Shown here one piece after another: positions 12,601 through 34,453 of a DNA stretch of 64,000 nt. The first letter of the stretch is position 1; each line of letters opens with the position of its first letter. The translations under genes were made by a program, and so were the position numbers. The notes under the pieces were generated by a model that was not told the DNA's origin, did not search any database, and worked only from the letters and a program-made list of their open reading frames with translations. The stretch lies in the sequence record MZ475897.1. One strand, given 5' to 3'.

Positions 12601-13371
12601 ATGAGCAATATCGATACCACAATGCCTGAAGGCAAATGGGAGTTCAACGAGTCGGTTGCTTGCGTGTTTGATAACATGCTGCAAAACTCCATCCCATCTT
12701 ATGGCCGTATGCGTGACCTGACGTACCGTCTGGGTCGTCGCTTCGTAACTCCCGGTTCAGCTATCGTTGATCTCGGTGCTTCACTTGGCCGAGCTATCGA
12801 ACCGTTTGCAAAAGAGTTCGGCAAGTATGACTACCATCATGCTGCTGACGCGCCGGGCGAAGACTACGAAACAGGCAATCACTATAGCCTGTATGAAGTA
12901 GCTCCTGCTATGCGCGAACGTCTGGTGCAGAATGAAGTGCTCAACTCAGTGAATGCCAAACTGGAAAGTGAATCGCTGGTAGATACTGACACGTTTATGT
13001 TCGACGGTCAGGTGCATTGCTCGTTGATTCTGAGTGTGCTGACTCTCCAGTTCACGCCGATTGAACATCGTCAACACATTCTGGAAAACGTGTACAACTC
13101 ACTGCAACCAGGCGGCGCATTCATCCTCGTTGAGAAGGTGTTAGGTGATAACAACTATCTCGACAAAATGCTGGTGGGCACCTACTACCAGATGAAAGGC
13201 GGTAACGGTTACAGCGCCGAGTCGATTGCGACTAAACGTAAGTCATTGGAAGGCGTACTCGTTCCTGTTAAAGCAGCGTGGAACGAAGAACTGTTGCGTA
13301 AAGCAGGCTTCGGTCAGGTGGAGAGTTTCTACCGCGACCTGAACTTCGCAGGATGGATTGCTATTAAGTAA
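12601..13371 (+). CDS. cmoA: carboxy-S-adenosyl-L-methionine synthase, CmoA family
   Basis: WEFNESVACVFDNMLQNSIPSY, DLGASLG, LTLQF, LQPGGAFILVEK, NGYS..SIATKRKSLE (Arg matching E. coli R199), LRKAGF, NFAG: colinear with E. coli CmoA. Confidence 0.9.
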   Translation: MSNIDTTMPEGKWEFNESVACVFDNMLQNSIPSYGRMRDLTYRLGRRFVTPGSAIVDLGASLGRAIEPFAKEFGKYDYHHAADAPGEDYETGNHYSLYEVAPAMRERLVQNEVLNSVNAKLESESLVDTDTFMFDGQVHCSLILSVLTLQFTPIEHRQHILENVYNSLQPGGAFILVEKVLGDNNYLDKMLVGTYYQMKGGNGYSAESIATKRKSLEGVLVPVKAAWNEELLRKAGFGQVESFYRDLNFAGWIAIK

Positions 13372-13380
13372 GGAAATACT

Positions 13381-14643
13381 ATGAAAGTAAACGGGCGTAT
13401 CTTAGCTATCGTCCCACACAAGACAATGCAAGACCGTACCAAGTCTGGTGTGGGTTCGTACATTGATGGGCTAGAGGCATACGGCTTCTGCGACTTTATC
13501 ACGGACGGAGAGAACAGCTCCGTTACGAAAAGTCAGTGGTTCACTTACGGTGACACTACTCTCAGTGACGGTTATAAGATAGGGCATATCCAGAGCGAGT
13601 TGCTGATTGCACTTGAGCGCCTCCCATACCGTGCGATTATTTGCAGCACGTATGAGGCGATTGAAGCCTGTGTGTCTCTGGGACTGCCAAAGATTATGCC
13701 CGTTTACTATCGCACGCACAACAGCTTTTTGCTCACACAAGATCTCAAGGGTCTTGGTGCAGAGAAGATCCATCGTGCGTTGTTGCAAGCACGCGTCACA
13801 GGGCTGCGCATACTTGCTAACTGTGATTCGACTGCGATCAATCTTACTGAGCGCTATAAGACGCCAGTACACGTTGCCTACAACTCGTTCTCGGTGCCTG
13901 ACTACAACCCACCAGCGCGGCGTGTTCCACAGTTGTTGATTATCTGTCGCTATGAGAAGGTCAAGCGCACGTTGTTTGCTGCGCGTATTGCTGCTGCATC
14001 AGGATTACCCGTTCGTGTTATGACAGGCAGTGATCGTCAAGCACGCAATTGGGAGAAAGAGCTGGCTGAGGCGGGTGTCAAAGAATACACTGTCGTCAGC
14101 GGCCTTAGCGGTAAACAGAAACTCGAATTTATAGGCGCTTGCACAGTAGCCCTTTCTACTGCGAGCGTTGAATCTTTTGCTAACGGTGTGCGTGAGTCTA
14201 TCCCCTACTGTCCTACCTTTATCGTGCAAACATCCAAGTACGATTGGGCTAAGGACTATACGCGCTTCTGTACTGCCGACAAGCATGTTCATATCAGAAC
14301 TGTTGATCGCGTATCAGACCAAGCCGTAGCTGAAATCGGAAGTGAGATAGCGCGAGTTGCTACCACACGTTATCTGACAGGGCCGCAGCGTAAGCAGCTA
14401 CTGACTGCTTGGGCAAAGCAAGTTGATCGTGGTTGGTCCGACTTTGTTCAGAAGGCTGTTGTTGACGATGACGGCAAGCCGCTGCGCACCGAGCTGTATC
14501 AAGAACTGATCGACAAATCAGAAATCGATTGGTCACAAACGCCCACGCTAATGCGTACTGTAAATGCGTTACATAAATGCCACGCTCGTTTGGGCCTGAC
14601 ATTTGATGGCACTAAAATCAAATATAAGAGGAAGCGCAAATGA
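13381..14643 (+). CDS. GT-B fold glycosyltransferase (GT4-like)
   Basis: N-terminal SGVGSY loop, CRYEKVKR donor-binding motif, E-x7-E motif ESFANGVRE. Confidence 0.75.
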   Translation: MKVNGRILAIVPHKTMQDRTKSGVGSYIDGLEAYGFCDFITDGENSSVTKSQWFTYGDTTLSDGYKIGHIQSELLIALERLPYRAIICSTYEAIEACVSLGLPKIMPVYYRTHNSFLLTQDLKGLGAEKIHRALLQARVTGLRILANCDSTAINLTERYKTPVHVAYNSFSVPDYNPPARRVPQLLIICRYEKVKRTLFAARIAAASGLPVRVMTGSDRQARNWEKELAEAGVKEYTVVSGLSGKQKLEFIGACTVALSTASVESFANGVRESIPYCPTFIVQTSKYDWAKDYTRFCTADKHVHIRTVDRVSDQAVAEIGSEIARVATTRYLTGPQRKQLLTAWAKQVDRGWSDFVQKAVVDDDGKPLRTELYQELIDKSEIDWSQTPTLMRTVNALHKCHARLGLTFDGTKIKYKRKRK

Positions 14644-15716
14644 GTGTTATCGGTGATATTTATAACATACCACAACCTTTCGCAATGTATGTCGGGAATT
14701 GTGAGACGCGTGCTCAAGCCAAAGTTGCTGCTGGTACAATCGAGTGGGCGCCAGAGAAAGTGTGCTGCACCGTAGATGATGGTAACAATCTGTTCCCCAA
14801 CGTACCTTCAATCAACCCTGCTGACGTGCATAAGACAGATGCAGAAACTTTAGTGATTGGCTGTGCACCTTTCGGCGGCCGCATTGACGAGCACATGGAC
14901 AAAGCTATTCGTAGCGCTATCTATCGTGGACGCAACATTGCTGCTGCTATGCATACGCGCCTGGCGGATAACCCCGAATACGTTGAGCTGGCCGATCGCT
15001 ACAACGTCAAGCTGTATGACTTCCGTCATCGTCCTGATGCGTACCCACTCGGTACTGGTGAGAAGCGTAGCGGTCTGCGTCTGTTAACTGTCGGTACTGA
15101 TAGCTCCTGCGGCAAGAAGTTTACCACGCTGTCTCTGTATCGTGAACTAAAGCGCATCCACGCAGACACTGTGTTTTGCTCTACTGGTCAAACAGGCTTC
15201 CTGATTAGCGGTTGCGGTATCAACAACGACACGATTGTTGCTGACTTCCTTGCTGGTGCTGCTGAATCCCTTTCGCCTGCAGGTCCTGCTGATCGTATCT
15301 ATCTGATTGAAGGCCAGGGCGCTATCACGCATCCAGCCTACACAGGCGGTAGCATGAGCTTGATTGCTGGCTCTCAGCCTGATCATCTCATCCTGTGCCA
15401 CGCATGGAACCGCCAGAATCAGTTGGGCGTTAAGCGTAAGCCTGACCTTGATTTTGAGATGCGTGCTAACATTGAAGCGGCGCGTATTCACGGTCTCAAC
15501 CCGACCTACATCGGTATCAGCATTAACTTCTCTGAGTGTGATTTGACACAGGATGAGCAAGATAAAATCCTGTACCAACTCGCATCAACGTATGAGATTC
15601 CCGTGTTCGACCCATCACAGGACACTTCTGTGCTGCGTGACCTCGCTCGTATGTTAGCAACTAAAGCCAAAGCAAGGAGCCTCGATGGCCAAGCATCCAC
15701 TGCGCAAGCTGTTTGA
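14640..15716 (+). CDS. DUF1611 family P-loop protein (DgcN-like N-acetyltransferase)
   Basis: VGTDSSCGKKFT, STGQTG, DFLAGAAE, IEGQGAITHPAY, GSQPDHLILCH. Confidence 0.88.
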   Translation: MSVIGDIYNIPQPFAMYVGNCETRAQAKVAAGTIEWAPEKVCCTVDDGNNLFPNVPSINPADVHKTDAETLVIGCAPFGGRIDEHMDKAIRSAIYRGRNIAAAMHTRLADNPEYVELADRYNVKLYDFRHRPDAYPLGTGEKRSGLRLLTVGTDSSCGKKFTTLSLYRELKRIHADTVFCSTGQTGFLISGCGINNDTIVADFLAGAAESLSPAGPADRIYLIEGQGAITHPAYTGGSMSLIAGSQPDHLILCHAWNRQNQLGVKRKPDLDFEMRANIEAARIHGLNPTYIGISINFSECDLTQDEQDKILYQLASTYEIPVFDPSQDTSVLRDLARMLATKAKARSLDGQASTAQAV

Positions 15717-16560
15717 ACAGCATGTGAAAAAAGAAGTGAAAGCAGACAAGGTAGCTGTGCTGCTTTCATCTGGCCTCGATGGTTTAGTCAGTGCGTTAGC
15801 TGCACACGACCTGGGTAAGAAGGTACATGCCTTCACATTCCAAATGGGTGACAACCCTAGCTTCGACAGTCGCCACGCACAGATCGTTGCACAAAAGATG
15901 GGATGGGAGTTCACTCTCGTTAAAGTTCCCACCAGCGTGTCTGCTATCGCGTTAGCGTGGCGCGTGCTGCACTCCAAGTATCGCTGCATCAAGAAGCGTG
16001 ACTATGAATGTGCGTACCCTATGGTCTATTGCTACAAGGCAATCAAAGACGCTGGGTATAAGTATGTGTTAAGCGGGCTGGTGGCCGATGGCTACTTCCT
16101 GTATAACCGTAACACGCACATTCAGAAAATCAGCGGCCCGCACTCTGACGCTCAGAAGTATCATGAGTTCCGTACTCAATACTTTAGTCCGTGGCTTAAA
16201 CACGGTAAGAAGTCTCTGGGCGTTGACGGGTACAACCCGAGCGGTATGTTGCAGCATGAAATGTTGTGCGATAACTTCGGCCTGATTCACGTTAACCCGT
16301 GGATGCAGAACAAGGTGTTTGACTACTTCATCAAATACACTTGGCAGGAGCTGAATCAGCCTAAGCAGAAGATGCCACTAACCGAAGCGTGGGCAGAACA
16401 CATTGCTCTTGTTGGTCATCGCCCACACAGGGGCTATCAGACAGAAGCCAAAGTGCCTGAATACTTTGAGCATCTGATCGATAACCCTGAGATTAACTTT
16501 AACGGGCGCAAGCGCATCATGGACGTGGCACGCGACTGGTCCAAACGAGAGCCTGAATAA
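15685..16560 (+). CDS. asparagine synthetase C-domain-like ATP-dependent amide ligase
   Basis: PP-loop VAVLLSSGLDG, VLSGLVADGYF (compare SGxGADExF), NPW...VFDY; no N-terminal glutaminase domain. Confidence 0.72.
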   Translation: MAKHPLRKLFEQHVKKEVKADKVAVLLSSGLDGLVSALAAHDLGKKVHAFTFQMGDNPSFDSRHAQIVAQKMGWEFTLVKVPTSVSAIALAWRVLHSKYRCIKKRDYECAYPMVYCYKAIKDAGYKYVLSGLVADGYFLYNRNTHIQKISGPHSDAQKYHEFRTQYFSPWLKHGKKSLGVDGYNPSGMLQHEMLCDNFGLIHVNPWMQNKVFDYFIKYTWQELNQPKQKMPLTEAWAEHIALVGHRPHRGYQTEAKVPEYFEHLIDNPEINFNGRKRIMDVARDWSKREPE

Positions 16561-16815
16561 ATGCATCCTGTTATCACAGACTTTCTTGGTCCTATCGTTA
16601 AGCGGCTGGGCTTATTCACTGCTATATTCGGTTTTGTCGGCGTGCTGCTGTCTGTGATCGCAGTGCTTGTGTGCCGCCCAGAAGTCCTTCAATACGAATA
16701 CGATACTGTAAATAGACTTCGTACTGAGGGTATTGTATTCTTGGGTAAAGGCGTTCTTATTTACATCGTAGGCGAGATACTTGAAGGCACGTTCAAGTGG
16801 AGAAAAGATGATTAA
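16561..16815 (+). CDS. putative membrane protein
   Basis: Two hydrophobic segments. Confidence 0.55.
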   Translation: MHPVITDFLGPIVKRLGLFTAIFGFVGVLLSVIAVLVCRPEVLQYEYDTVNRLRTEGIVFLGKGVLIYIVGEILEGTFKWRKDD

Positions 16816-17071
16816 CAAATTCGTGATGAAGAAGACTCCGACCATTGAAGCCTGTCAGTGGAATGGAGAGAACAAGGAAGAGATTGAAGCCTTCCTTGGC
16901 AATAACGGATTCGTTGTTGGGCGTTACGTGCAGATTGGTGTTCTGGATAAATACCAGAAGCCAACTATTGCTAACGTAAGCGTAGGCAACTATGTGATCA
17001 AGCGCGATGATGGTAAGTTCGACGCCATTACTGCGCAAGATCTGTTTGAGAATTATGTATTAGCAGATTGA
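16808..17071 (+). CDS. conserved phage hypothetical protein
   Basis: KKTPTIEACQWNG...GNYVIK pattern common in phage proteins; start moved to ATG 16808. Confidence 0.6.
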   Translation: MINKFVMKKTPTIEACQWNGENKEEIEAFLGNNGFVVGRYVQIGVLDKYQKPTIANVSVGNYVIKRDDGKFDAITAQDLFENYVLAD

Positions 17072-17078
17072 GGCCATA

Positions 17079-17531
17079 ATGAATCTGTTTTCTATTTTAA
17101 AACAGCAAGTGAAGAAATCCCTGACGACCGAAGCAACGCTTGAGCCAGAAGTGCGCAAACACTTTGACTGGCGTTTCAGTGTTGACGTCAAAGGTCTGAT
17201 GTACATTGTAGGCAAGACTGGTGCTAACACCTGCTTCTATCTTGAGCCAGGTCACGTTGAGCCTACTGCCTGCTATCCTGATGAACTACTTGCGAAGATT
17301 GATAGCTGGGGCGCTGCTAAGTATGTGTCCTACGCTGTCTACTTCAAGAAGTTCTCAAGCCCTGTAGCTGAGAACATCAAGACGCTTGAGCAAGCCAAGA
17401 CAGGCAAGCCTAAAGCGTTTAAGAAAGGCTACTTTATCTGTGGCGTAACACCGAAAGGTAAGCGCGTCAAACTGTGTCGTCTGCACAACAGCCTGAGCGG
17501 TATGCAGTGGGTTGATGTAGATCAGAAGTAA
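17079..17531 (+). CDS. hypothetical protein
   Basis: 150 aa ORF with GAGG RBS. Confidence 0.6.
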   Translation: MNLFSILKQQVKKSLTTEATLEPEVRKHFDWRFSVDVKGLMYIVGKTGANTCFYLEPGHVEPTACYPDELLAKIDSWGAAKYVSYAVYFKKFSSPVAENIKTLEQAKTGKPKAFKKGYFICGVTPKGKRVKLCRLHNSLSGMQWVDVDQK

Positions 17532-17545
17532 AACAAGGAGCATAT

Positions 17546-17866
17546 ATGATTAGCGACATTGACATTGGCCATTATTATTGTTCTGCGAGCGGTATACCGT
17601 TTCGCGTAAAAGAACGTGCAGCACACGGACAAGATTGTTCTCTGTCGATGATCGTATTTGAGAACGTGGAAGCAACTAAGGATTACCCTGTTGGTCAAAC
17701 TTGGGTGCTTCCAGAATCTCTGTTCGTGAAACAGTATTCCGAATTTACGGAAGGAAAGTATCATGAACGAAACAACGCTCTTAGAGCATCTGAAATCAAG
17801 ACACTGGCAACCAGAGAAGCATTTCGGGTGGCTTTCGCCGAAGACCCTGACAGTGCCACTGTATAG
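17546..17866 (+). CDS. DUF1653-like protein
   Basis: GHYY..SG.PFRV..RA.H...MIVFE...TWVLP..LF pattern. Confidence 0.55.
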   Translation: MISDIDIGHYYCSASGIPFRVKERAAHGQDCSLSMIVFENVEATKDYPVGQTWVLPESLFVKQYSEFTEGKYHERNNALRASEIKTLATREAFRVAFAEDPDSATV

Positions 17867-18279
17867 CTTTGACCGACAGATGAGAGGAGTTCAAGTTTAT
17901 ACGCCTAGCGCACCGAAGAAAGACCCGAACCCTAAAGCGTGTCGTTACTTCACTCGCGTGTTCGGTGGCAAACAGTTGGTGTGGGGAACGGAAATTAGAC
18001 CTATACGGGCCGACCGTTTTCTTAACTGAGTCTGTGTTCAAAGCGTGTGCGCTACATCGTCTCGGTCTCAATGCGTGGTCTGTTTTAGGCTCGAACGTGA
18101 GTGACTATTTATACCACCAGCTCAGTCTTCTTAATCTGCACTTTGTTTGTCTAGGTGATGCGGATAAAGCTGGTGAGGAGTTCAGTCAGACGTTTGGTCG
18201 TGGTGCTGTTAGTGCCGACTTGGACGAGATGACTGATGAGCAGTTACTCGATTTAACTCTACCACTATTAAGGAAATAG
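17763..18279 (+). pseudogene. frameshifted Toprim (primase-like) gene
   Basis: ORF 17763-18029 (LTVPLYS...YFT...VWGTE) continues in the +1 frame as LDLYGPTVFLTESVFKA...GDADKAG; shift at GGAAATT near 17990-17996. Confidence 0.65.
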
Positions 18280-18280
18280 G

Positions 18281-18709
18281 ATGGAACATAAAGTTGTCGT
18301 GCGTATTCTCGGACCTGTTGGCAGCGGTAAGTCTTCTGTTTACGCCAAGCTCGTTAAAGGTCTGACTGATACTGGCGCTATCATCAAACACGCAGATGAG
18401 CAAGCGTGGAATATGCTGAATAACAGCGGTGAGGTAACTTCGGCCGACACGGTTCTCGATGAGTTTCGCACCGAAGTTACCTTCGAAGAAGTTGTGATTC
18501 GTGACGACTATACCAAGTCTAAGAATCAGATCATGCAGTTCTTCGCGTACTCGCATCTGCCGCCTAACTTGCAAGCGATCAGTAAACCGATTGCGTTGCT
18601 CGCTCAGGAGATGGACCAGAATCTGCCTGATGGTGCTGAGAAAGCCGCTGGTCTGCGTAAGCTGCTTGAAGCGAAAGACTGTCTGGTTCGTGCGCTGGTA
18701 GCCAAGTAA
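18281..18709 (+). CDS. hypothetical protein with N-terminal P-loop
   Basis: GPVGSGKS plus the common phage domain QFFAYSHLP...RKLLEAKD. Confidence 0.6.
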   Translation: MEHKVVVRILGPVGSGKSSVYAKLVKGLTDTGAIIKHADEQAWNMLNNSGEVTSADTVLDEFRTEVTFEEVVIRDDYTKSKNQIMQFFAYSHLPPNLQAISKPIALLAQEMDQNLPDGAEKAAGLRKLLEAKDCLVRALVAK

Positions 18710-18723
18710 TTCGGAGAGCAAAC

Positions 18724-19113
18724 ATGCCTACTTTTATTCGCCCTCCATCATTACTCAAGTCAGTGCCTACGTCATCAACTGTGGAAGCAACTGACATTTT
18801 CGCATCACTCGCACCTATCAACAACGTAATTAACCTAAGTGCCGTTCAAGCTCTGCGCCGTGAGCAAATCGGTGCTGGTCATGTTGAACAGTTCTCTGAG
18901 GCTATTGGTCTGCATCCAGAAGACCCTGCTCCTGAAAATGATCTTGTTAGCGTTCCAGCGATCACTTTCGCCTTTGAAGGAGATGCGTGTGAGACCTGGT
19001 ATTTCTGCGGACCTGAACGTACCTTAGCCGAATGGGCTGTAGTGCGCGATGCAGTTGAACAATCTTTTGTTGATAATTCATACCATCACGATATGAACCT
19101 CGAAATCAACTAA
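18724..19113 (+). CDS. hypothetical protein
   Basis: 129 aa ORF with GGAG RBS. Confidence 0.6.
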   Translation: MPTFIRPPSLLKSVPTSSTVEATDIFASLAPINNVINLSAVQALRREQIGAGHVEQFSEAIGLHPEDPAPENDLVSVPAITFAFEGDACETWYFCGPERTLAEWAVVRDAVEQSFVDNSYHHDMNLEIN

Positions 19114-19119
19114 CAACAC

Positions 19120-19145
19120 AAAGGGTGGCTTCGGCTGCCCTTTTT
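19120..19145 (+). terminator. Rho-independent terminator
   Basis: AAAGGGTGGC-TTCG-GCTGCCCTTTTT. Confidence 0.85.
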
Positions 19146-19149
19146 CGAT

Positions 19150-19158
19150 CTGTAAATA
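19150..19158 (+). promoter_or_regulatory. CTGTAAATA motif, candidate phage promoter
   Basis: One of 13 + strand copies of CTGTAAA(T) found, most 30-100 nt before a start codon. Confidence 0.55.
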
Positions 19159-19187
19159 ACTCGTATAACATCTAACGAGAAACTACC

Positions 19188-19589
19188 ATGAGACCTGAAA
19201 ACATTTCACGCACCTATCGCGTCGGTCAGTCTGACCTGGAGAAAGCACACAATGTCTGCGGAGAGAACAATGTAACACTCTCAGATGTGGTGCGCAGATA
19301 CATCGAAAGAATCGTACTGACTGAGGGTGAGTTCCTTATGAACGAGCGTAAGCACGTACCTGAGTCCCAACTGAATGTACGCCTGCCCTTTTATATTGCG
19401 CACTCCTTTGCATCTGTGTGTAAGTCTCGCGGTACGTTAGCCTCTAAAACCATTCTCAACTTTGTCAAGAATATTGCTCTTTCCGGGACTATCCCTGAGG
19501 AGTTAAAGTATGCTTCTGACGCAGAGTTGCGTGCCTATATTACCTCAGAGCGCTCTCGCCTCGATGCACTGGAAGCAAAACTCAAATGA
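19188..19589 (+). CDS. tandem ribbon-helix-helix-like DNA-binding protein
   Basis: Two RHH-like units (RTYRV...TLSDVVRRYI; QLNVRL...LASKTILNFV). Confidence 0.5.
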   Translation: MRPENISRTYRVGQSDLEKAHNVCGENNVTLSDVVRRYIERIVLTEGEFLMNERKHVPESQLNVRLPFYIAHSFASVCKSRGTLASKTILNFVKNIALSGTIPEELKYASDAELRAYITSERSRLDALEAKLK

Positions 19590-20425
19590 TTCTAACTAGT
19601 CCCATTCGCTATCAGGGTAACAAACGCACTCTGATGCCTCTTATTCTCGAACATGCGCCTGTGAAGGATTGCGTTCGCATGATAGACGCATTCGGTGGTA
19701 GTGGTACTGTTGCGCTCAACATGCCTCACAAGTTTCGCATCTACAATGAACTGAGCACGCCTGTGTTTGAGATCGTCCAGCTGCTTGCGCATCAAGACCC
19801 GAAGAAAACATTGGGTCAGATTAAGCGTATCGTCAAGCGTTTTTGTCTAACCAATAGCAGCCAAGACAACTACGACATGTTCCGTGCGTATGTGCAGAAG
19901 AAGCCAAGTCCGTTGTTCCATTACATCGCACACAGGCACGCACGCTCTAACATGCTGCGCTTCAACCAGAAAGGTATCTACAACGTGCCCTTCGGTGAGC
20001 GTGGCCTGATTGGCAAGTTCGATCAGCTTGAACAGGAGCTGGTGCAGTTCCACGAGCGTATGCAGAACACGCACATCACCAACATGCGCTATAACCTGTT
20101 GCTCAAGTCTGTGTCAAAGCATATCGGACCGAACACGTTCATTTACTTTGACCCTCCATATCTTGCTAGTGGTGCAATGCAGTACGGCAAGTGGACTGAG
20201 CACAACGAGCGCAACCTGTTGTCCGTGCTTGAATATCTGAATCGTCAAGGCTGCCCGTGGATGTTGAGCAACGTTCTCCAACATCGTCATCACACTAACG
20301 ACCTGCTCAAGCGCTGGCTAAAGAAACACGCAACGACTGTCATCTATCCTGACAAGTCTTATTCAATGGCCAACTCTCATTCCGATAGTCACAGCACTAT
20401 CGAGATTCTGGCAATGAACTACTGA
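19586..20425 (+). CDS. dam: DNA adenine methyltransferase, D12/Dam class
   Basis: SPIRYQGNK, DAFGGSG, RFNQKG.YNVPFG, YFDPPY. Confidence 0.9.
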   Translation: MILTSPIRYQGNKRTLMPLILEHAPVKDCVRMIDAFGGSGTVALNMPHKFRIYNELSTPVFEIVQLLAHQDPKKTLGQIKRIVKRFCLTNSSQDNYDMFRAYVQKKPSPLFHYIAHRHARSNMLRFNQKGIYNVPFGERGLIGKFDQLEQELVQFHERMQNTHITNMRYNLLLKSVSKHIGPNTFIYFDPPYLASGAMQYGKWTEHNERNLLSVLEYLNRQGCPWMLSNVLQHRHHTNDLLKRWLKKHATTVIYPDKSYSMANSHSDSHSTIEILAMNY

Positions 20426-20432
20426 GGTACAA

Positions 20433-20819
20433 ATGGTCAAACAGTATTGTGCCGATAAGTACGAGGGGGATCTTGAGGGTCACCCTGTTGTGCTGCTGCT
20501 ATCGTTTAAGATAGGTGGCCCTACGCCTATGCGAATCTCAGGACGTGACCTGTATCGCTATCTGGGCATAAGCAAGAACTACAGTAGCTGGGTAAACGAC
20601 TCTATTGCTGACTGTGGTCTTGTCGAGAACTCGGACTATGTGATTGAGTGGTTCAAGTCAGATGCGAATGGGCATTCGATAGAACACAAATTCACACAGC
20701 ACGCCGCCATTGAGATTGCAATGCGCGGACGGAGTGTATTGTCTAAACGTATTCGTCGATCTGTGTGTCGTCGAGATGGCTTCATTCGATTTGTAGGAGA
20801 ACATAATGAACAAGATTGA
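20433..20819 (+). CDS. AntA/AntB antirepressor-like protein
   Basis: ISGRDLYRYLG...YSSW......GLVENSDY...AAIEIAM. Confidence 0.7.
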   Translation: MVKQYCADKYEGDLEGHPVVLLLSFKIGGPTPMRISGRDLYRYLGISKNYSSWVNDSIADCGLVENSDYVIEWFKSDANGHSIEHKFTQHAAIEIAMRGRSVLSKRIRRSVCRRDGFIRFVGEHNEQD

Positions 20820-21879: not shown

Positions 21880-21890
21880 TTGAGGTCAGT

Positions 21891-22613: not shown

Positions 22614-22620
22614 GGTCAGT

Positions 22621-23711: not shown

Positions 23712-24096
23712 TCAGTTACGTGATCAATTGACCGAAGCTGAATACGCAGAACTTGAGCGCACGACAGCACGGTCAATCATGGAACAAGTGTGGGCACTAC
23801 GCGGCTGGACGGTTAAGCTCGACTGGTGCAACTATATGTGCGACGACGTTGATTGGTTATTCCATGGTAATGAACGTAAAGCACCGGTTGATCACGCTAT
23901 GCCGAATTCTGGTGTTGGCACTAGCATTGAGCAGCATCGCCTTAATGTCGTGTTTACTCCTACTGAGGTTAGCGTTACGAACTCACTGGTAGACAGCCCT
24001 GTCACGGGCACTGGTATGTCACTGCGCTGTGCTTACTGCGCGTGGCTTTTAGCAATCGAAAAACAAAAGGCTGCCAATGCGCTGCAATCTGACTGA
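23698..24096 (+). CDS. hypothetical protein
   Basis: 132 aa coupled ORF. Confidence 0.5.
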   Translation: MSSVNQLRDQLTEAEYAELERTTARSIMEQVWALRGWTVKLDWCNYMCDDVDWLFHGNERKAPVDHAMPNSGVGTSIEQHRLNVVFTPTEVSVTNSLVDSPVTGTGMSLRCAYCAWLLAIEKQKAANALQSD

Positions 24097-24592
24097 ACTG
24101 CCTATCAAACTCGATCAGGCTGAAAACATTATGGGCAGCGTGTTTGCGCTTGCTGCTGGCTCTAAGTCCAAACGCCGTGCTACTGCTGCAATGCTCATCC
24201 ATTTCCATGAAGGCTACCCTACGATCATCAGTAGTGGTGTCAATGGTACTGTGCCTGGTGAAAGCAACGTGTGTGAGAATGAAGACCTCACTCTGACGTT
24301 TGCTCACGTCACCCACGCAGAAGCTAACTGCCTCAATCGCATGGACGAATACAGTCTGTGGCCAGAAGAAGAGGACATCCTGTTTTGTACTGACAGCCCA
24401 TGTCCTGATTGTTTGCAGCAACTCGAATCTGCTGGTGTGCAGACCATCGTTTATGCGCGTGAATACAGACTCACAGAGCACCTGGATAAGTCTGCTATTC
24501 GCATGTATTGTCTCGATATTGAGAACGTGAGGGCGTCTTTGCTGAAATCTGTAAATCGTATAGACGAAGTGATTGCAACCACACCTACTTAA
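24077..24592 (+). CDS. dCMP deaminase
   Basis: SGVNGT, HAEANC and SPCPDC zinc-deaminase motifs. Confidence 0.88.
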   Translation: MRCNLTELPIKLDQAENIMGSVFALAAGSKSKRRATAAMLIHFHEGYPTIISSGVNGTVPGESNVCENEDLTLTFAHVTHAEANCLNRMDEYSLWPEEEDILFCTDSPCPDCLQQLESAGVQTIVYAREYRLTEHLDKSAIRMYCLDIENVRASLLKSVNRIDEVIATTPT

Positions 24593-24609
24593 ATACCATA
24601 AGGATTGTC

Positions 24610-25290: not shown

Positions 25291-25295
25291 CAATA

Positions 25296-25917: not shown

Positions 25918-25920
25918 TTC

Positions 25921-25947
25921 ATGGGGCCTCGTGCCCCATTTCTGTTT
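25921..25947 (+). terminator. Rho-independent terminator
   Basis: ATGGGGC-CTCGT-GCCCCAT then TTCTGTTT. Confidence 0.6.
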
Positions 25948-25961
25948 CTCGGAGAGATGCT

Positions 25962-27897: not shown

Positions 27898-28201
27898 TGC
27901 GTTCTGGTCCTCTCCTGCTTCTGCGTTCGCACCCACTGTTGTAATCATCTCATGGTTTGTGTTCTGTGAGATTCGTGAGCGCCGTGCATTACGTGCAGCA
28001 CAGCGCGTTGTAGCAAGTGGCTGGGAGCCCGTAGAGCACGCCACGTATCAACACAAATGGCTGCCGTGGGTTAAGTGCTATGTCATGTTCTACACTGTCA
28101 GTCTGAACGATAAGTTCATGCCTGCTGTGTATGTGCTAATAGGCAAGCATAGTTCTGAAATTCCCATGCACAAATTCCATTCTCGTTGGAGTTTAGTATG
28201 A
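27848..28201 (+). CDS. putative membrane protein
   Basis: Hydrophobic N-terminal segment; start probably a few codons later. Confidence 0.45.
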   Translation: MSISKMMENFLKYLWSDAFWSSPASAFAPTVVIISWFVFCEIRERRALRAAQRVVASGWEPVEHATYQHKWLPWVKCYVMFYTVSLNDKFMPAVYVLIGKHSSEIPMHKFHSRWSLV

Positions 28202-28515
28202 CACCCCTCATTATGTTTGATGCACGAACCATTCGCGTGCTCAAGCAAAGTTTCGGTCAGGACAAGCCTTTTGTTGTAGCGGGATTAAACCCAATCGTTG
28301 GCAACAAAGGCGACCGTGTTACTCTCGCTAATGCCTGTAGCGTAGTCGCCATACCTCGTGTGATGGGACTTGAAGTAGGTCAAGTGCTTTACGTAGGCAC
28401 GGATGATGAAGTCTATGCATGGCCTTCTGATATGGTGATGGAATTTGCTTCTGTCTCTGATAACCAAACTCGGGCCATTGCATATGCATTGCGCCCAATA
28501 CTTTCGGATGATTAA
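28198..28515 (+). CDS. hypothetical protein
   Basis: ATGA-coupled to the upstream ORF. Confidence 0.5.
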   Translation: MTPLIMFDARTIRVLKQSFGQDKPFVVAGLNPIVGNKGDRVTLANACSVVAIPRVMGLEVGQVLYVGTDDEVYAWPSDMVMEFASVSDNQTRAIAYALRPILSDD

Positions 28516-28517
28516 AA

Positions 28518-29618
28518 ATGACAGGTCCTCTCGATCTCACTAATCCACAGCACTTCGAACTGTATTCGCTGCACAGCGTTGATGCACAGTATATCAATCT
28601 GTGTGACGCGCTCCTCACTCAGGGTACGCACGAATCTGACCCAGAGCGCACTGCTGATACGTGGCATACGCTGATCGGCATCGGCTTCCAGTTGTCTAAC
28701 ACCAACATCGCTTTCCCTGCGCTGCTGTCTAAGCGTGTCAACGTCCGTGCAGCTATCGATGAATCATGCTGGTTCGCACGCGGTGAAACGAACATCGCAA
28801 CTCTCGGTTCTAAAATCTGGAACGAGTGGGCAGACGAAGAAGGCGAGAACGGTCCTATCTACGGCTTCCAGTATCGCAACTGGCCTGACATTAAAGTGTT
28901 CAACACTGTCGAAGGTATGATTGAGCAGCACATCCCACCAGCAATGATTGAGCGCATCTCGAAAGAGATCAACCGCATGAAGGCGCAGGGCTATATCGAA
29001 ACTGCGTTGCCTGACGGTCGCGTGTTGTACGAAGGCTATATCGATCAGTACGCTGATGCACTGCGTCAAATCATGGCGCGTAGTCGCAGCCGTCGCATTC
29101 GTGTGCAAGCGTTCAACCCTGGTTACGTTGGTATGCAGAGCCTGCCTCCGTGTCATACCGAGTTTGAGTTCAACGTGACCAAAGCCACTGCGTATGAAAT
29201 TGCGCAGATGGAAGCACGCTCAATGCGTCCTGACGACGACTCACTGCATATCGTGGTGACGATGCGCAGCAATGATGCACTTCTCGGGCGCCCCTTCAAC
29301 ATCGTTGGCTACAGCGCCATGCACCAGTTGTTTGCGAAGTGGGCGGGTCTGAACGTTGGTTCGTTTACTCTGAATGTGACCAATATGCACATGTACGATC
29401 ACCACCGCGAAGCGTATGCACAACAGCGTGAGCAGTGGCTGGAACTACAGACGCAGATGCAGACGACAGGCAAACCTGTTGTTTACCCTACCCTCGAAAT
29501 CACTGACGACATTCTGGGCCTGACGCCAGAAGAGCTGCTGGATAACGTCAACGTCGATTGGTTCGAGCTGGTGGACTACTCTCCTAAACCTGCTGTTAAA
29601 GGACGCGTAACCAAATGA
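28518..29618 (+). CDS. thyA: thymidylate synthase family enzyme (dUMP-specific)
   Basis: GPIYGFQYRNW, LPPCH, MRSND, PFN (Asn, the dUMP determinant), HMYDHH. Confidence 0.82.
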   Translation: MTGPLDLTNPQHFELYSLHSVDAQYINLCDALLTQGTHESDPERTADTWHTLIGIGFQLSNTNIAFPALLSKRVNVRAAIDESCWFARGETNIATLGSKIWNEWADEEGENGPIYGFQYRNWPDIKVFNTVEGMIEQHIPPAMIERISKEINRMKAQGYIETALPDGRVLYEGYIDQYADALRQIMARSRSRRIRVQAFNPGYVGMQSLPPCHTEFEFNVTKATAYEIAQMEARSMRPDDDSLHIVVTMRSNDALLGRPFNIVGYSAMHQLFAKWAGLNVGSFTLNVTNMHMYDHHREAYAQQREQWLELQTQMQTTGKPVVYPTLEITDDILGLTPEELLDNVNVDWFELVDYSPKPAVKGRVTK

Positions 29619-30277
29619 TGCTAATCAGCCGCATTGCTGCATTCCTGTATGTTGGGTATGCAGAGTCAGTGGAAGACATTCCACGTTTGCTTGTCGAAAA
29701 AGTTAAGGTGCGCATCGAAGATCCCGATTGGGACCCGTTTGATGACGTTACCGTCGAAGATGCACCGCCTATTCTCGAAATGACAGGCAAGGTCATATAT
29801 CATCTGCCGCTCAACTGCTTCCTGATTGACGGTCGCATGGAGCAGGACGAATCGTCCGAAGATACTCTCAAGATGCAGAAGTATTGTCAGACCAACTTCT
29901 TCAAGCACAAGCAGACGCGTAATGGCCGTGTAGGCATTGCCGTGGACAGCATGATCAGAGAACTGTCTTATGCAGAGGCACAGCACCCTAACTGGCCTAC
30001 TGAGCCTCTGCACGCTGGTGCTATCCTTGCAGAAGAAGCTGGTGAGTGTCTGCGTGATTGCGTGTCATACGATGAAACAGGGCGTGAAGATCTGCTTGCA
30101 TCTATGGCAGAAGAAGCGGTGCAGACAGGCGCTATGGCGATTCGTTTTCTGATCAATGCGCATCGCTCTAAAGAGCGCACGCTGCCTCGCTCTACAGTCC
30201 GTGACCTGCTGTCAGACACATCCATTCCTCTGGCTGAGCGTGTTGCTAAACTTCTTGATGTGGTGGACGCTAAATGA
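29615..30277 (+). CDS. MazG-like all-alpha NTP pyrophosphatase domain protein
   Basis: WPTEPLHAGAILAEEAGE...EEAVQTGAMAIRF (EExGE...EE acidic pattern). Confidence 0.6.
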   Translation: MMLISRIAAFLYVGYAESVEDIPRLLVEKVKVRIEDPDWDPFDDVTVEDAPPILEMTGKVIYHLPLNCFLIDGRMEQDESSEDTLKMQKYCQTNFFKHKQTRNGRVGIAVDSMIRELSYAEAQHPNWPTEPLHAGAILAEEAGECLRDCVSYDETGREDLLASMAEEAVQTGAMAIRFLINAHRSKERTLPRSTVRDLLSDTSIPLAERVAKLLDVVDAK

Positions 30278-31185
30278 AACTACTTGCACTTATTCCAGCT
30301 GCTACCACCAATGTTTTCCGCACGCTGCATTGTGTAGGCACGGCAGAAGAGTTCCCTGTAGGCGAGCATCCTAAGTGGGATGGCTTTGGCTTGAACCTGA
30401 CTAACGTCAAAATCATTCCTGACCTGGCTAAAGACGCCGTGCCTGATTCGTTCTATGTTACTATCGATAGCCACCTCGACTGGTCTGTTGATCTTGACCG
30501 TATCGATACGTTCAGCGCTGATTATCTCATCTGGTGCGGTAAGCATACGCCTTCAATTGAAGCTGTGCTCGAAGCCCACATGATTAAAGGCCAGCTGCCG
30601 AATCTGGTGCAGGACTTCGATGCGTTCGTTGCAGATCTGCAAGAGCGTCTGGACAACATGACCAGCCTCGCTAAAGATCGTATGACCATTTCAGGCAGCA
30701 CGCTGATCGATAGCGACACCACAGCCAAGTATAACCTGTGGGCTATCTATCGTCACTGTCTAATGTTGGACAACAAGATGGTCCTGCTGTACGGTAAGGA
30801 CAATCACATCCATGTGTCCGACACGCACGTATCTGAAAAGGGTATCGGCTGGTGGTTGACCGAGCATAACAAACACATGATGAGCATTGCACAGCAAAAC
30901 GATCTGCTGGCCGCTTACATTACGTTTGAACGCGATAGCTCTGGCTATACGTTTGTTGGTGCTGACGGTACTCAGGTTAAACGTCCTGTCGAAAGCAGCG
31001 AGTTCATGCACATGGCGCATCACGGCCTGTTCCCTAAAGTTGTAGTGCGTGAAGATGAAGACGGACGTAACTTCGAACTGTCGTTTGATTACGCCGAATA
31101 CTTCCCACAAGCGTATCACGATTTTGTCAATCATGCGTGGGCCGGCCGTTCTGATCGTTCACGCGATTTGGTTCGCTTCATCTGA
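30274..31185 (+). CDS. hypothetical protein
   Basis: 303 aa coupled ORF. Confidence 0.6.
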   Translation: MKLLALIPAATTNVFRTLHCVGTAEEFPVGEHPKWDGFGLNLTNVKIIPDLAKDAVPDSFYVTIDSHLDWSVDLDRIDTFSADYLIWCGKHTPSIEAVLEAHMIKGQLPNLVQDFDAFVADLQERLDNMTSLAKDRMTISGSTLIDSDTTAKYNLWAIYRHCLMLDNKMVLLYGKDNHIHVSDTHVSEKGIGWWLTEHNKHMMSIAQQNDLLAAYITFERDSSGYTFVGADGTQVKRPVESSEFMHMAHHGLFPKVVVREDEDGRNFELSFDYAEYFPQAYHDFVNHAWAGRSDRSRDLVRFI

Positions 31186-31236
31186 TCGTCGCGCTGTCTG
31201 CTGTCAGTAATTTGAAGCTACTATAGGAGACAGCGC

Positions 31237-31575
31237 ATGAAATATGATAAGACCAAAGACTACCAACCGTTCAAGTATCTTGAGCCAGACCCAAAGGCCC
31301 CAAGAGTAGGCTTCTACGGTTCGACTGGCCACACTGTCACAAAGGACGTTCTGATAGGGCAGGACGTATGCGAGTTTGAGTTCAAGCCCGAAGAGTTGAA
31401 CAATATGAATCGCGGTACGTTGCTCTTTCGTGCTAAAGATAGTGGCGGAACTATTGTCGTAAAGAAATGCTCTGTGCTTGGATTGAAAATGGTAATTACG
31501 CTAGAGAGAAGGGTGATTCAGTTCGGCAAGGTTCAAGCTGAATGGATGACCACATCCCGACTGTATAACTACTAA
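31237..31575 (+). CDS. hypothetical protein
   Basis: 112 aa ORF with AGGAG RBS. Confidence 0.6.
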   Translation: MKYDKTKDYQPFKYLEPDPKAPRVGFYGSTGHTVTKDVLIGQDVCEFEFKPEELNNMNRGTLLFRAKDSGGTIVVKKCSVLGLKMVITLERRVIQFGKVQAEWMTTSRLYNY

Positions 31576-31617
31576 CTGTAAATACATTGTACAGAAGCAA
31601 CTACAAGAGAAAAGAGA

Positions 31618-32316
31618 ATGGCAAAAATTGCTAAAGCAAAGGAAGGGAAAAAGAAAAGCAACCCTATGTTGATTGACCTGAAAAAGTTCAAGTCAGTTAA
31701 ACAGCTTAAGGGTGCGAAGTACAACCCTCGTTTCATTACAGACAGCCGACTGAGAGCGCTCGAAGGTTCTTTGGGCAGCTTCGGCGATTTGTCTGGCGTG
31801 GTGTTCAACAACAGCGTAGACAGTGGCGTGCTGATCTCAGGCCACCAGCGTCTCAAGTCGATTGAGAAGTGGGACTCGCGCATTGAGATTCAGCAAACGT
31901 CTGACAAGTACGGCACGGTAGCGCTGGGTTATATCCATGCCACCAGCGCCAAAGGTAAAACGATCAGCATCCCACTGCGTATCGTTAACTGGTCAGATAA
32001 GAAAGTGGAGTTTGCTGCTAACATTGCTGCGAACGCCCACGGCGGTGAGTTCGATAACAAAAAGCTCGCGTCTCTTGTTGAGAAGCTGGACCTGACTACA
32101 ATCAAGCCAGCTCTTATCGGGCTTGACCCGTTAGAGATTCGCGGCCTGCAACAGACGCTGAGCAAACAAGCTATCGTCGAGCAGGAAAAGCGTGTTGGTA
32201 AAACAACAGGCAAAATGAACGGCAGCACTGGCGAGTTCAAAGAGTACACGACTGATGAAGTTGGTACTGCGCTGACCTGCACCTGCCCACGTTGTGGCTT
32301 TAAGTTCGAGGGATAA
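31618..32316 (+). CDS. ParB/Srx N-terminal domain protein with C-terminal Zn knuckle
   Basis: YNPR.I......L..SL..FG, LISGHQR, ANIAAN..GGEFD, CTCPRCG. Confidence 0.78.
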   Translation: MAKIAKAKEGKKKSNPMLIDLKKFKSVKQLKGAKYNPRFITDSRLRALEGSLGSFGDLSGVVFNNSVDSGVLISGHQRLKSIEKWDSRIEIQQTSDKYGTVALGYIHATSAKGKTISIPLRIVNWSDKKVEFAANIAANAHGGEFDNKKLASLVEKLDLTTIKPALIGLDPLEIRGLQQTLSKQAIVEQEKRVGKTTGKMNGSTGEFKEYTTDEVGTALTCTCPRCGFKFEG

Positions 32317-32317
32317 C

Positions 32318-34453
32318 ATGATCATCAAGCCGCCTACAATGAAAGAGATTAATAAGCTGCCCAAGCCCTGGTCAGGTATGAGTTTCTTTGCAGGTTGCGG
32401 TGGTTCATCTACCGGTCACAAGATGGCCGGTATTAACATCCTACTGAGCAACGAGTTCGTGGACGCGGCTCGTGAATCGTATGAAGCGAACCATCCAACA
32501 ACCAAAGTGTTGCCCCACGATATTCGTCGTCTTGACCCGAAAAAGCTGCTTAGCTATTGCGGCCTGAGTCAGGGCGAACTGGACTTGCTCGACGGCAGTC
32601 CTCCGTGCTTCACCGAAGACACGTTCATTCATACAGACACTGGTATGAAGTTCATCACTGATATGCGCATCGGTGACTTCGCTATGACCTCTGTTGGTAA
32701 GTATCATCCTGTGTATGACACGATGGTACGTCCGTATGATGGTCAGATGCACAGAATTGAAACGCTGCTTGGTCAGAACAATGCAACGCCTGAACATCCG
32801 TTCTTTGTTCGTCGTCAGAGCGAAGAGGGTGGCGGGTACAGTGAGCCGTTCTGGTGTGACGCTAAAGATGTGCAGGAAGGCGATTTGTTGGGTACGCCTC
32901 GTGTTACGCCTGATATGGGTGAAGCACACACGCATGAGATTATCTCGTCGTTGACTGCACAGCTTGTGCGTTGGATTGCATTGCCTGAGTTCTGGTGGCT
33001 GATTGGTCACTGGTGCAATCGCGGTGCAATCGATAAGATTCGTGGTGTCGATGTTATTCAGTTCACCTCGATGACAGCGATGGAAAACTCGCTGGTGGAA
33101 CAAGCGTTCGACGTGCTCAAGTTAAGCAGCATCAATAGCGCTTCGTCCGACATGGGCGTTCATCGTAAGACCGTTCGTGTTGTTATGGACACAGACCTGT
33201 TGCTGTTCTTGCGTATGTTTATCGCACAGGGCAAGAAGTCTATGTCCCGCCGTCTGCCTGGCATGATCTTCCATCTGGCCAAAGAGCTGAAACAGCAATT
33301 CATTCTCGGCTATCTGGGTCGTGATTACGTCACAGCAATGGGCGTTGGTCATGCGTTAGAGGCTGACTCAAAGCGCTTCCTCGTTGAGATGAATTACCTG
33401 TGCTGCTCTGCGTTCAACCGACCGCTGTTCGATGCAATGTTGTTCACTGACTTGCATTACGGCAGTCCTATGTTACCGCCGAGTCGCTTCATCACCAAAG
33501 AGCACATCGGCTTCCTGTTCTTGCAAGAAGAGGTTAATTTCTTCTTCGAGTTCGAGCCGGAAGACCCGCATCTGTGGGTTGAAGTGATTGAGAACTTTAC
33601 GCACCATGAAACGTGCAACGTCTACAACTTCTCAGTCAGTGTTGATGAGACGTATGTTGCCAACGGTATGGTCGTACATAACTGCAAAGGGTTCTCGACT
33701 GCTGGCGTGAAAGAAGACGGCTGGGGCAAAGAGGTTAAGTACAGCGGCAACAAGTATCAGCAAGTCGATGACCTGTTCGATCAGTATTGCCGTATGCTCA
33801 AGCACATGCAGCCTAAAACGTTCACTGCGGAAAACGTTAGTGGCCTCGTTAAAGGTGCGTCGAAGGGTTACTTCATTGAAATCATGAAGACCTTTGATCA
33901 GCTGGGCTACTATGTGCGAGCGCCGTTGCTTAATGCTGCGTGGCTTGGTGTGCCTCAGTCTCGTGAGCGTATCATCTTTATGGGTGTGCGCAAAGACGTG
34001 GCGAAAGCACTCGGCTATAAAACTGCGTTGACTGCTGTGCCTGATGTAACACCTCAATCAAGCATGGCGTTCCTTGCAGATGCATTGCCGAACATTCGTC
34101 GCTATAAAGGTACGGAGCGTGACATTATCAAGTATCTGCCTGCTGTTAACGGCCCGATGCCTACGATTACCGCTGCTGATGCTATCGCATACGAAACAGC
34201 ACGCTTCTCCTCTGCTGGCTTCATTGAAGACGACAAAGGGCACAGACGCAAGCTGACGATTGACGAACTCAAAGTTGTGTCAGGCATGCCTAGTGATTAC
34301 GTGCTCACAGGTAAGTTTGAAGAACAATGGGAACGTCTCGGTCGTGTGTGCGTACCTGCAATGACGTGTGCTGCGGCAAGCGCGTTGATACGCCATGTGC
34401 TTGAGCCTTACGCGAAGCTGCGTAAAAAGAAACCTGGGGATCGTTTTCGTTAA
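32318..34453 (+). CDS. C5 cytosine DNA methyltransferase homologue, intein-containing; predicted carboxymethyltransferase
   Basis: Motif I FFAGCGG, IV GSPP/CKGFS, VI ENVSGL, VIII QSRER, IX RKLTIDE, X reads LGRVC instead of xGN[AS]V; start ATG 32318. Confidence 0.88.
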   Translation: MIIKPPTMKEINKLPKPWSGMSFFAGCGGSSTGHKMAGINILLSNEFVDAARESYEANHPTTKVLPHDIRRLDPKKLLSYCGLSQGELDLLDGSPPCFTEDTFIHTDTGMKFITDMRIGDFAMTSVGKYHPVYDTMVRPYDGQMHRIETLLGQNNATPEHPFFVRRQSEEGGGYSEPFWCDAKDVQEGDLLGTPRVTPDMGEAHTHEIISSLTAQLVRWIALPEFWWLIGHWCNRGAIDKIRGVDVIQFTSMTAMENSLVEQAFDVLKLSSINSASSDMGVHRKTVRVVMDTDLLLFLRMFIAQGKKSMSRRLPGMIFHLAKELKQQFILGYLGRDYVTAMGVGHALEADSKRFLVEMNYLCCSAFNRPLFDAMLFTDLHYGSPMLPPSRFITKEHIGFLFLQEEVNFFFEFEPEDPHLWVEVIENFTHHETCNVYNFSVSVDETYVANGMVVHNCKGFSTAGVKEDGWGKEVKYSGNKYQQVDDLFDQYCRMLKHMQPKTFTAENVSGLVKGASKGYFIEIMKTFDQLGYYVRAPLLNAAWLGVPQSRERIIFMGVRKDVAKALGYKTALTAVPDVTPQSSMAFLADALPNIRRYKGTERDIIKYLPAVNGPMPTITAADAIAYETARFSSAGFIEDDKGHRRKLTIDELKVVSGMPSDYVLTGKFEEQWERLGRVCVPAMTCAAASALIRHVLEPYAKLRKKKPGDRFR
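32606..33682 (+). mobile_element. intein (359 aa) with degenerate LAGLIDADG region
   Basis: Begins CFTEDT, block B ATPEHPF, ends YVANGMVVHN followed by Cys+1; remnants WWLIGHWCNRG and FILGYLGRD. Confidence 0.9.

Follow-up and report, generated by a model that had tools for sequence, protein, structure and literature searches.

Do two groups of genes lying 15 kb apart in a jumbo phage build a single pathway of DNA hypermodification, and what would such a pathway finally attach to cytosine? The question is raised by a stretch of 64,000 nucleotides, hereafter the window, which megablast identifies as bases 1-64000 of the 265-kb genome of Erwinia phage pEa_SNUABM_21 (MZ475897.1); this jumbo phage infects Erwinia amylovora and has a near-identical relative, pEa_SNUABM_7, assigned to the genus Snuvirus. 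One locus holds homologues of the carboxy-S-adenosylmethionine (Cx-SAM) synthase CmoA and of the amide ligase CmoY, with genes for a predicted glycosyltransferase and a DUF1611 family protein between them; the other holds a homologue of the cytosine carboxymethyltransferase CmoX, interrupted by an intein and preceded by a ParB-like gene (Table 1). Every plausible gene of the cmo region lies on the plus strand. By homology, the core is a further instance of the published CmoA-CmoX-CmoY pathway and is itself no longer novel, and we consider it fairly probable that this pathway is extended here by steps of the glycosyltransferase and the DUF1611 protein.

In December 2025, Yang et al. (Nat Commun; PMC12783734) reported that CmoA of Synechococcus phage S-B43 makes Cx-SAM, that CmoX, an arginine-bearing homologue of C5 methyltransferases, makes 5-carboxymethylcytosine (5cxmC) at GC sites, and that CmoY, an AsnB-like ligase, adds glycine, SpCmoY alone being sufficient for this ligation. 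These activities were demonstrated by liquid chromatography-mass spectrometry (LC-MS) and a crystal structure. In the structure of SpCmoX (8YF3), R350 touches the carboxylate of Cx-SAM; the wild-type enzyme uses only Cx-SAM, the R350N variant is dead, and SpCmoX is active alone in vitro, without ParB. Genome mining in the same study yielded 5,615 CmoX, 4,257 CmoA, 2,251 ligase and 1,660 ParBc genes, with a ParBc association noted for many CmoX contigs. The need for prephenate was raised there as an open point, and other amides of 5cxmC were explicitly left open.

The window CmoX resembles this enzyme far more closely than it does ordinary methyltransferases. Its PF00145 domain (E 6.3e-38) is interrupted by the intein, its top match among solved structures is SpCmoX (8YF3, E 1.8e-54), 38 orders of magnitude ahead of HaeIII (1e-16), and it shares 55% (N-extein) and 31% (C-extein) identity with SpCmoX. 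Rebuilt across the intein, whose insertion site is marked here by a slash, the sequence DGSPP/C aligns with SpCmoX S95-C98, and CKGFSTAG aligns with CSAFSVAG (C98). In motif X, ERLGRVCVP aligns with ERVGRMVPP, so that Arg676 corresponds to R350, at the position where HhaI/HaeIII-type enzymes have Asn. GSPP/C, ENV, QxRxR and the arginine of ER.GR are all invariant in a six-sequence CmoX alignment.

The intein matches Pfam Intein_splicing (E 4.5e-8, with a score short of the gathering threshold) and Hint_2, and presents an N-terminal Cys (C97), the block B motif TPEH and a C-terminal ANGMVVHN (ending at N455), followed by Cys456. Since the catalytic Cys is at the same time the +1 nucleophile of the intein, splicing would rebuild the active site SPPCKGFS. 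The intein-bearing precursor is kept in 51 phage records, from Erwinia phages, Dickeya phage AD1 and Yersinia phage fHe-Yen9-02; CmoX of PaBG, of the metagenomic contig L024 and of S-B43 is intein-free. Both states occur within a single phage population, sampled twice in the metagenome series ENA GROS21: the CmoX of L007 (743 aa; L007:5783-8014) carries a homologous 384-aa intein at the same site, and that of L009 (341 aa; L009:1712-2737) matches it minus the intein and is otherwise near-identical, making the intein polymorphic at SPP/C. The coexistence of cmoX alleles with and without the insert is a hallmark of intein mobility. In the centre of the window intein, a stretch of roughly 200 aa gave no Pfam or PDB sequence match, and an AlphaFold2 (AF2) model built from a two-sequence alignment was unusable (predicted local distance difference test score, pLDDT, 41).

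CmoA is the top family for its gene in both PDB and NCBIfam searches, with matches to TIGR00740 (E 6.6e-39), to the CmoA structures 4GEK and 1IM8 (E about 5e-28; 4.9e-28 for 4GEK) and to phrog_4752 (E 1.9e-77). The protein, acidic with an isoelectric point (pI) of 5.2, is 28% identical to the tested SpCmoA (E 2e-25); its SAM-binding motif VDLGASLG aligns with YDLGCSLG, and the KR of E. coli CmoA (SQKRSMLE) is retained (ATKRKSLE). The window CmoY is basic (pI 9.3) and carries an Asn_synthase PP-loop domain (PF00733, E 1.8e-13), in which S28, G30 and D32 are invariant in the alignment; its alignment with SpCmoY spans 275 aa at 33% identity (E 2e-50).

The original prediction had named a CmoA, an ATP-dependent amide-ligase-like gene and a C5 DNA methyltransferase with an Asn-to-Arg change in motif X, and all three are present on the plus strand as described, CmoA being the best match among methyltransferases for the first of them. 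Its statement that cmoB is absent agrees with a Pfam screen of the remaining 37 open reading frames (ORFs) of at least 140 aa in the window, which returned no Methyltransf_9/CmoB and no additional methyltransferase. The same prediction had mentioned a cyanophage core of CmoA, Arg-methyltransferase and amide ligase and had allowed that the core might be known; this was correct, the core being the S-B43 pathway (PMC12783734), and all three window proteins are homologous to its experimentally tested enzymes. Beyond the homologues themselves, the window and S-B43 share the SPPC motif, the Cx-SAM-binding arginine, a glutaminase-less AsnB-type ligase, the lack of cmoB and a ParB-like gene adjoining cmoX.

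In contrast to the single operon of S-B43, the window genes are split into two loci 15 kb apart. The prediction had nevertheless treated them as one pathway, and gene neighbourhoods in relatives support this, in a comparison limited to about ten independent cases. In independent contigs the genes are again grouped, their products 25-60% identical to those of the window. They are contiguous in PaBG (ParB-CmoX-CmoA-x-CmoY, where x is an intervening gene) and in L024 (ParB-CmoX-CmoA-GT-DUF1611-racemase-CmoY, where GT is the glycosyltransferase), and other metagenomic contigs give ParB-CmoX(intein)-GT-DUF1611-CmoY-CmoA (L007/L008), CmoA-x-GT-DUF1611-racemase-CmoY-DAHP synthase (L004; DAHP, 3-deoxy-D-arabino-heptulosonate 7-phosphate), GT-DUF1611-CmoY (L023/L025, with a GNAT gene following in L023) and DUF1611-racemase-CmoY (L022). 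Among cultured phages, pEa_SNUABM_3 has CmoA-GT-DUF1611-alanine-racemase-like-CmoY, Dickeya phage AD1 has CmoA-DUF1611-CmoY and no GT, and Erwinia phage Y3 has CmoA, a divergent CmoY and a 2-oxoglutarate (2OG)-Fe(II) oxygenase, and no DUF1611. Because the same genes are contiguous or co-occur in these relatives, the two loci of the window are best seen as one system pulled apart in this lineage. Co-occurrence across phage genomes, which the prediction had proposed as a check, points the same way among close jumbo-phage relatives: the CmoA, CmoY, CmoX and ParB-like genes are jointly present in AD1 and Y3 and jointly absent from their relative JA11 (PMC6143709 Table 5). A radical SAM gene outside the window (AD1_267 / Y3_272) shares this pattern of presence in AD1 and Y3 and absence from JA11 (PMC6143709 Table 5), and its product could be a further member of the pathway.

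The extra enzymes that had been claimed beside the core are real and conserved, in the form of the two genes between cmoA and cmoY. For the first, an AF2 model built on 30 homologues (pLDDT 89.9) was compared with the PDB by Foldseek, and the top 50 matches were all GT-B enzymes, including SenB, TarM, SdgB, BshA and GtfA (E 1e-11 to 1e-8). The family conserves R190, K195 and E264...E272 in the EX7E spacing, and its profile matches SdgB (E 1.9e-7). Most relatives fall below threshold against Glycos_transf_1 (PF00534; E 1e-5 to 6e-3), and one distant relative, P0019, passes it (31.7 vs 26.4 bits). The gene always lies inside the cmo cassette in the loci examined, and a metagenome scan with its alignment retrieved one locus.

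The DUF1611 protein matches PF07755 (E 7.5e-47, 159.8 bits) and PF17396 (E 5.5e-18, 65.6 bits), both over the Pfam gathering score, as well as DgcN (PDB 7XRJ, E 3.6e-50; NF041892, E 2.9e-85), with which it shares a two-domain architecture, strong sequence similarity and the P-loop GTDxxxGK, present in the family as an invariant GTDxxCGKK. It differs from DgcN in being phage-encoded and in being paired, in relatives, with an alanine-racemase-type gene dependent on pyridoxal 5'-phosphate rather than with DgcA. Its reading frame overlaps that of cmoY by 32 nt. Among 50,697 phage records, DUF1611 occurs in only 34, all of Erwinia/Dickeya jumbo phages and always just upstream of a cmoY match, and an IMG/VR scan with the DUF1611 alignment retrieved only the same phage group.

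This gene also travels with a particular ligase. The window CmoY belongs to a clade distinct from that of S-B43, with 33% identity and an insertion of roughly 9 residues; members found with DUF1611 share 81-100% identity within the Erwinia/Dickeya group, against 23-33% with the CmoY of DUF1611-less phages, and Y3, PaBG and S-B43 all have the other clade and no DUF1611. In six metagenomic neighbourhoods (loci L004-L009, L022-L025) plus AD1 and pEa_SNUABM_3, DUF1611 precedes CmoY in every examined contig whose CmoY belongs to the window clade (at least 58% identity), either directly or with nothing but a racemase gene in between. That racemase homologue, which resembles Alr, DadX and VanT, stands between DUF1611 and CmoY in pEa_SNUABM_3, L004, L022 and L024. 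Charge offers a weak hint as to who acts on what: in all lineages, the glycosyltransferase (pI 9.3 in the window, 8.8-9.3 overall), CmoY, the CmoX C-extein and the ParB-like protein are basic, as opposed to the acidic to neutral CmoA, DUF1611 (4.9-7.0) and racemase, a pattern which suggests that the glycosyltransferase acts on DNA and that DUF1611 and the racemase act on a small molecule.

Taken as one pathway, these genes would work as follows, the CmoA, CmoX and CmoY steps being drawn from homology to tested enzymes and those of DUF1611 and the glycosyltransferase from gene context. CmoA would convert SAM and host prephenate into Cx-SAM. The CmoX precursor would excise its intein, restoring the SPPC active site, and the mature enzyme, with Arg676 holding the cofactor carboxylate, would carboxymethylate phage DNA at cytosine C5, yielding 5cxmC; the adjoining ParB-like protein probably assists or times this step. 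CmoY would then adenylate the 5cxmC carboxylate and form an amide with an amine. On the small-molecule side, the acidic DUF1611/DgcN-like protein may provide the amino donor, N-acylate it or select it; a D- or diamino acid is a reasonable guess for this donor, because relatives insert an alanine/serine-racemase homologue and because DgcN acts on a D-amino acid. Finally, the basic GT4-like glycosyltransferase is predicted from its modelled fold and its setting to glycosylate the adduct on the DNA. A bulky glyco-aminoacyl-carboxymethylcytosine would result, shielding the genome from restriction and other nucleases. Given the differences from the S-B43 gene set, the end product of the window is probably not the plain glycine amide.

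A more specific version, which we rate as less probable, extends this to the Erwinia/Dickeya jumbo phages and a set of uncultured phages, which would build a hitherto undescribed multi-part modification: an amide-linked, perhaps D- or N-acylated amino acid, provided via the DgcN-like enzyme and, in certain lineages, a racemase, and subsequently glycosylated by a dedicated GT4-like DNA glycosyltransferase, with the intein gating CmoX. Lineages would differ, AD1 lacking the sugar, Y3 using a 2OG oxygenase and L023 a GNAT, and L004 feeding prephenate through its own DAHP synthase. The variant genes lie next to cmoY. The Y3 oxygenase (L010:4095-4733) matches PF13640 (E 1.6e-15), and the L023 acetyltransferase (L023:10192-11100) is a RimI-like GNAT. 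In L004 (Logan SRR26596593 contig, 58 kb), a DAHP synthase gene (L004:12162-13025) directly follows cmoY; its product passes the TIGR00034 aroFGH cut-off (180 vs 173 bits) and is missing the first ~46 positions of the profile. Part of the feedback site of type I-alpha DAHP synthases lies in that N-terminal stretch, and the phage enzyme may raise shikimate flux to prephenate for CmoA. This PF00793 protein had also been considered as a 3-deoxy-D-manno-octulosonate 8-phosphate synthase feeding the glycosyltransferase, a role rejected because it passes the aroFGH equivalog cut-off. The differing tailoring genes next to cmoY suggest a modular family of 5cxmC derivatives.

Several points weigh against the extended pathway. 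For pEa_SNUABM_21 and its Erwinia/Dickeya relatives the chemistry is a prediction from the genes, and splicing of the CmoX intein is deduced from its motifs. The window CmoA scores below the curated NCBIfam equivalog cut-off (TIGR00740, 134 vs 193.3 bits), a distance to be set beside that of SpCmoA, which is experimentally active and comparably remote from E. coli CmoA (27.9% identity). The glycosyltransferase (420 aa) has no sequence match in Pfam, NCBIfam, PHROGs or PDB, the 64-kb window contains no racemase, and the pI rule is not strict, as SpCmoY acts on DNA yet has a pI of 5.8. The DUF1611 protein lies below the DgcN equivalog cut-off (NF041892, 286 vs 480 bits) and is therefore to be filed as a DUF1611 family member and not as DgcN. 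DgcN itself is a catabolic D-glutamate N-acetyltransferase, which N-acetylates the alpha-amine of a D-amino acid; such an acetylation would block ligation unless there were a second amine or the phage protein catalysed another reaction.

These points leave room for a simpler account, in which the core follows the S-B43 pathway and stops at a simple amide of 5cxmC, and the adjacent glycosyltransferase and DUF1611 serve unconnected purposes, for example the modification of host envelope sugars, phage proteins or host metabolites. The link of the two proteins to DNA is one of gene context, the GT4 family acts mostly on non-DNA acceptors, DgcN, the sole characterised DUF1611 member, works on a free amino acid, and AD1 keeps DUF1611 without the glycosyltransferase. 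We nonetheless regard this account as unlikely, since the order GT-DUF1611-CmoY is kept, with overlapping frames and between cmoX/cmoA and cmoY, in several unrelated contigs at 25-50% identity, DUF1611 is found nowhere else among the phage records searched, and its presence co-varies with the CmoY clade. Less probable still is a two-part ligase, in which CmoY would only adenylate 5cxmC and the DgcN-like DUF1611 protein would deliver a D-amino acid as the acyl acceptor. The rationale is that an amide of 5cxmC with an amino acid is an N-(substituted acetyl) amino acid, like the DgcN product, and the strict co-occurrence of this CmoY clade with DUF1611, the overlap of the two genes, the accompanying racemase and the insertion relative to SpCmoY would all fit; SpCmoY, however, is enough for glycine ligation by itself, and an acidic protein such as DUF1611 is unusual for one acting on DNA. 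Very improbable, finally, is that DNA is not carboxymethylated at all, CmoA serving the cmo5U34 modification of tRNA together with a host CmoB and the methyltransferase being either an ordinary 5-methylcytosine enzyme or inactivated by its intein. RefSeq does annotate the CmoA homologue as a tRNA methyltransferase, and the equivalog score of CmoA and the interruption of the methyltransferase gene agree with such a role; it is opposed by the absence of cmoB from the window, by the invariant arginine at a position whose change to Asn kills SpCmoX, an enzyme that in its wild-type form uses Cx-SAM only, by the adjacency of cmoA, cmoX and cmoY in relatives, and by the intact splicing blocks of a precursor conserved across so many records. 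The extended CmoA-CmoX-CmoY pathway is the reading we favour.

Table 1. Features of the cmo loci in the window (positions 1-64000 of MZ475897.1)
Feature	Position	Strand	Details
Conserved protein near cmoA (phrog_37218), orf240	11435..12157	+	240 aa, basic; phrog_37218 E 6.7e-77
CmoA homologue, predicted carboxy-SAM synthase (SAM + prephenate -> Cx-SAM)	12601..13371	+	256 aa; TIGR00740, PDB 4GEK
Predicted GT-B fold, GT4-like glycosyltransferase	13381..14643	+	420 aa; AF2 model and Foldseek
DUF1611/DgcN-like protein, Rossmann-like N domain and P-loop domain	14640..15716	+	PF07755, PF17396
CmoY homologue, AsnB-type PP-loop AMP-forming amide ligase without glutaminase domain	15685..16560	+	291 aa; PF00733, SpCmoY
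ParB-like protein directly upstream of cmoX	31618..32316	+	phrog_620 E 2.3e-31; GHQR motif
CmoX precursor	32318..34453	+	711 aa from ATG; ORF opens at GTG 32294
CmoX N-extein, motifs I-III, ends ...LLDGSPP	32318..32605	+	52-55% identity to SpCmoX residues 22-98
Intein, 359 aa, Cys97-Asn455 from ATG, between SPP and catalytic Cys	32606..33682	+	Pfam and motifs
CmoX C-extein, catalytic Cys456 (= +1 residue), motifs IV-X, Arg676 in motif X	33683..34453	+	PDB 8YF3

The ParB-like gene ends at 32316 and the cmoX ATG lies at 32318, and the two are probably co-translated. The protein is 42-45% identical to the ParB-like proteins encoded beside cmoX in PaBG, L007, L009 and L024, and sequence searches returned no Pfam PF02195 match at E 0.01 and no PDB match. 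It is a possible partner or activator of CmoX, perhaps comparable in action to the ParB proteins that activate phage thymine dioxygenases (PNAS 2026; PMC13229309), a system in which a small ParB-like gene likewise adjoins the gene for a post-replicative DNA base-modifying enzyme. Unlike in that system, the putative partner here is a C5 carboxymethyltransferase, and its model SpCmoX works alone in vitro.

Upstream of cmoA, and separated from it by an ORF of 126 aa, lies orf240, for which homologue search, family scans and profile-versus-PDB comparison gave no family or PDB match. Its homologues precede cmoA in AD1, Y3 and pEa_SNUABM_3, L004 shows a weak match (40% over 58 aa) immediately before that gene, and whether orf240 belongs to the pathway is uncertain.

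The arrangement follows the same logic as hydroxymethylpyrimidine hypermodification, in which T4 hydroxymethylcytosine (hmC) glucosylation and the thymidine types equip the C5 position with a handle and decorate it after replication with an amino acid or sugar; those systems likewise use GT-B glycosyltransferases and sometimes ParB-like helpers. The thymidine hypermodifications based on 5-hydroxymethylpyrimidine were reportedly described by Lee et al. in 2018 (as cited in PMC13229309). In the window, by contrast, the handle would be the carboxylate of Cx-SAM rather than a hydroxyl installed by a hydroxymethylase or dioxygenase, and no kinase or aGPT-Pplase genes are seen. A thymidylate-synthase homologue (28518-29618), which at 366 aa exceeds ThyA by about 100 aa and has insertions near residues 125-173 and 222-240, retains LPPCH and PFN; its Asn is of the type found with deoxyuridine monophosphate (dUMP) as substrate and not the Asp of deoxycytidine monophosphate (dCMP) hydroxymethylase, and it is therefore not a dCMP hydroxymethylase. 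A dCMP deaminase lies near it at 24077-24592. The possibility that the glycosyltransferase serves a T4-like hmC pathway was rejected on the grounds that this homologue is of the dUMP type and that no hydroxymethylase was found in the window.

The only other methyltransferase seen in the window, between the two cmo loci at 19586-20425, is a Dam-family N6-adenine methyltransferase homologue (TIGR00571, 114.1 vs a cut-off of 114.85 bits; phrog_56), and the phage DNA is probably adenine-methylated as well. Close to it are encoded an AntA/AntB antirepressor domain protein (20433-20819; PF08346, E 1.5e-12) and a small RelB-antitoxin-like protein with a weak match (19188-19589; E 1.5e-4). The window opens with a DnaB-like helicase (1-1500), and a 5'-3' exonuclease lies within 8431-9941, most likely at 8913-9941 by analogy with AD1 gp011. 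Gene orientation turns to the minus strand from about 46.4 kb on (46.3-64 kb), with a negative GC skew at 46-48 kb.

Glycosyltransferases, racemases, acetyltransferases, DAHP, DUF1611, inteins, jumbo phages and Erwinia go unmentioned in the main text of the S-B43 report (PMC12783734). New relative to that text and to the later literature searched are the intein at the catalytic Cys and the conserved GT4-like and DUF1611 genes, as are the racemase, DAHP-synthase, GNAT and oxygenase variants and the occurrence of the cassette in easily grown jumbo phages of Erwinia, Dickeya and Pseudomonas.

5cxmC was first shown to be a natural base in December 2025, and its single known downstream product is the glycine amide (PMC12783734). 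Together with its relatives, the locus defines a cassette of seven genes, conserved and portable, which predicts at least two further steps, a glycosylation and a DgcN-like step, and a modular family of products across the cultivable phages pEa_SNUABM_21, pEa_SNUABM_3, AD1, Y3 and PaBG. The diversity of carboxyl-handle DNA chemistry is thereby directly testable by LC-MS. If the prediction is true, DUF1611 would gain a first role beyond the catabolism of D-glutamate, and new enzymes for site-directed DNA functionalisation would become available. For the biocontrol of fire blight with phages, the cassette could explain how these phages resist host restriction.

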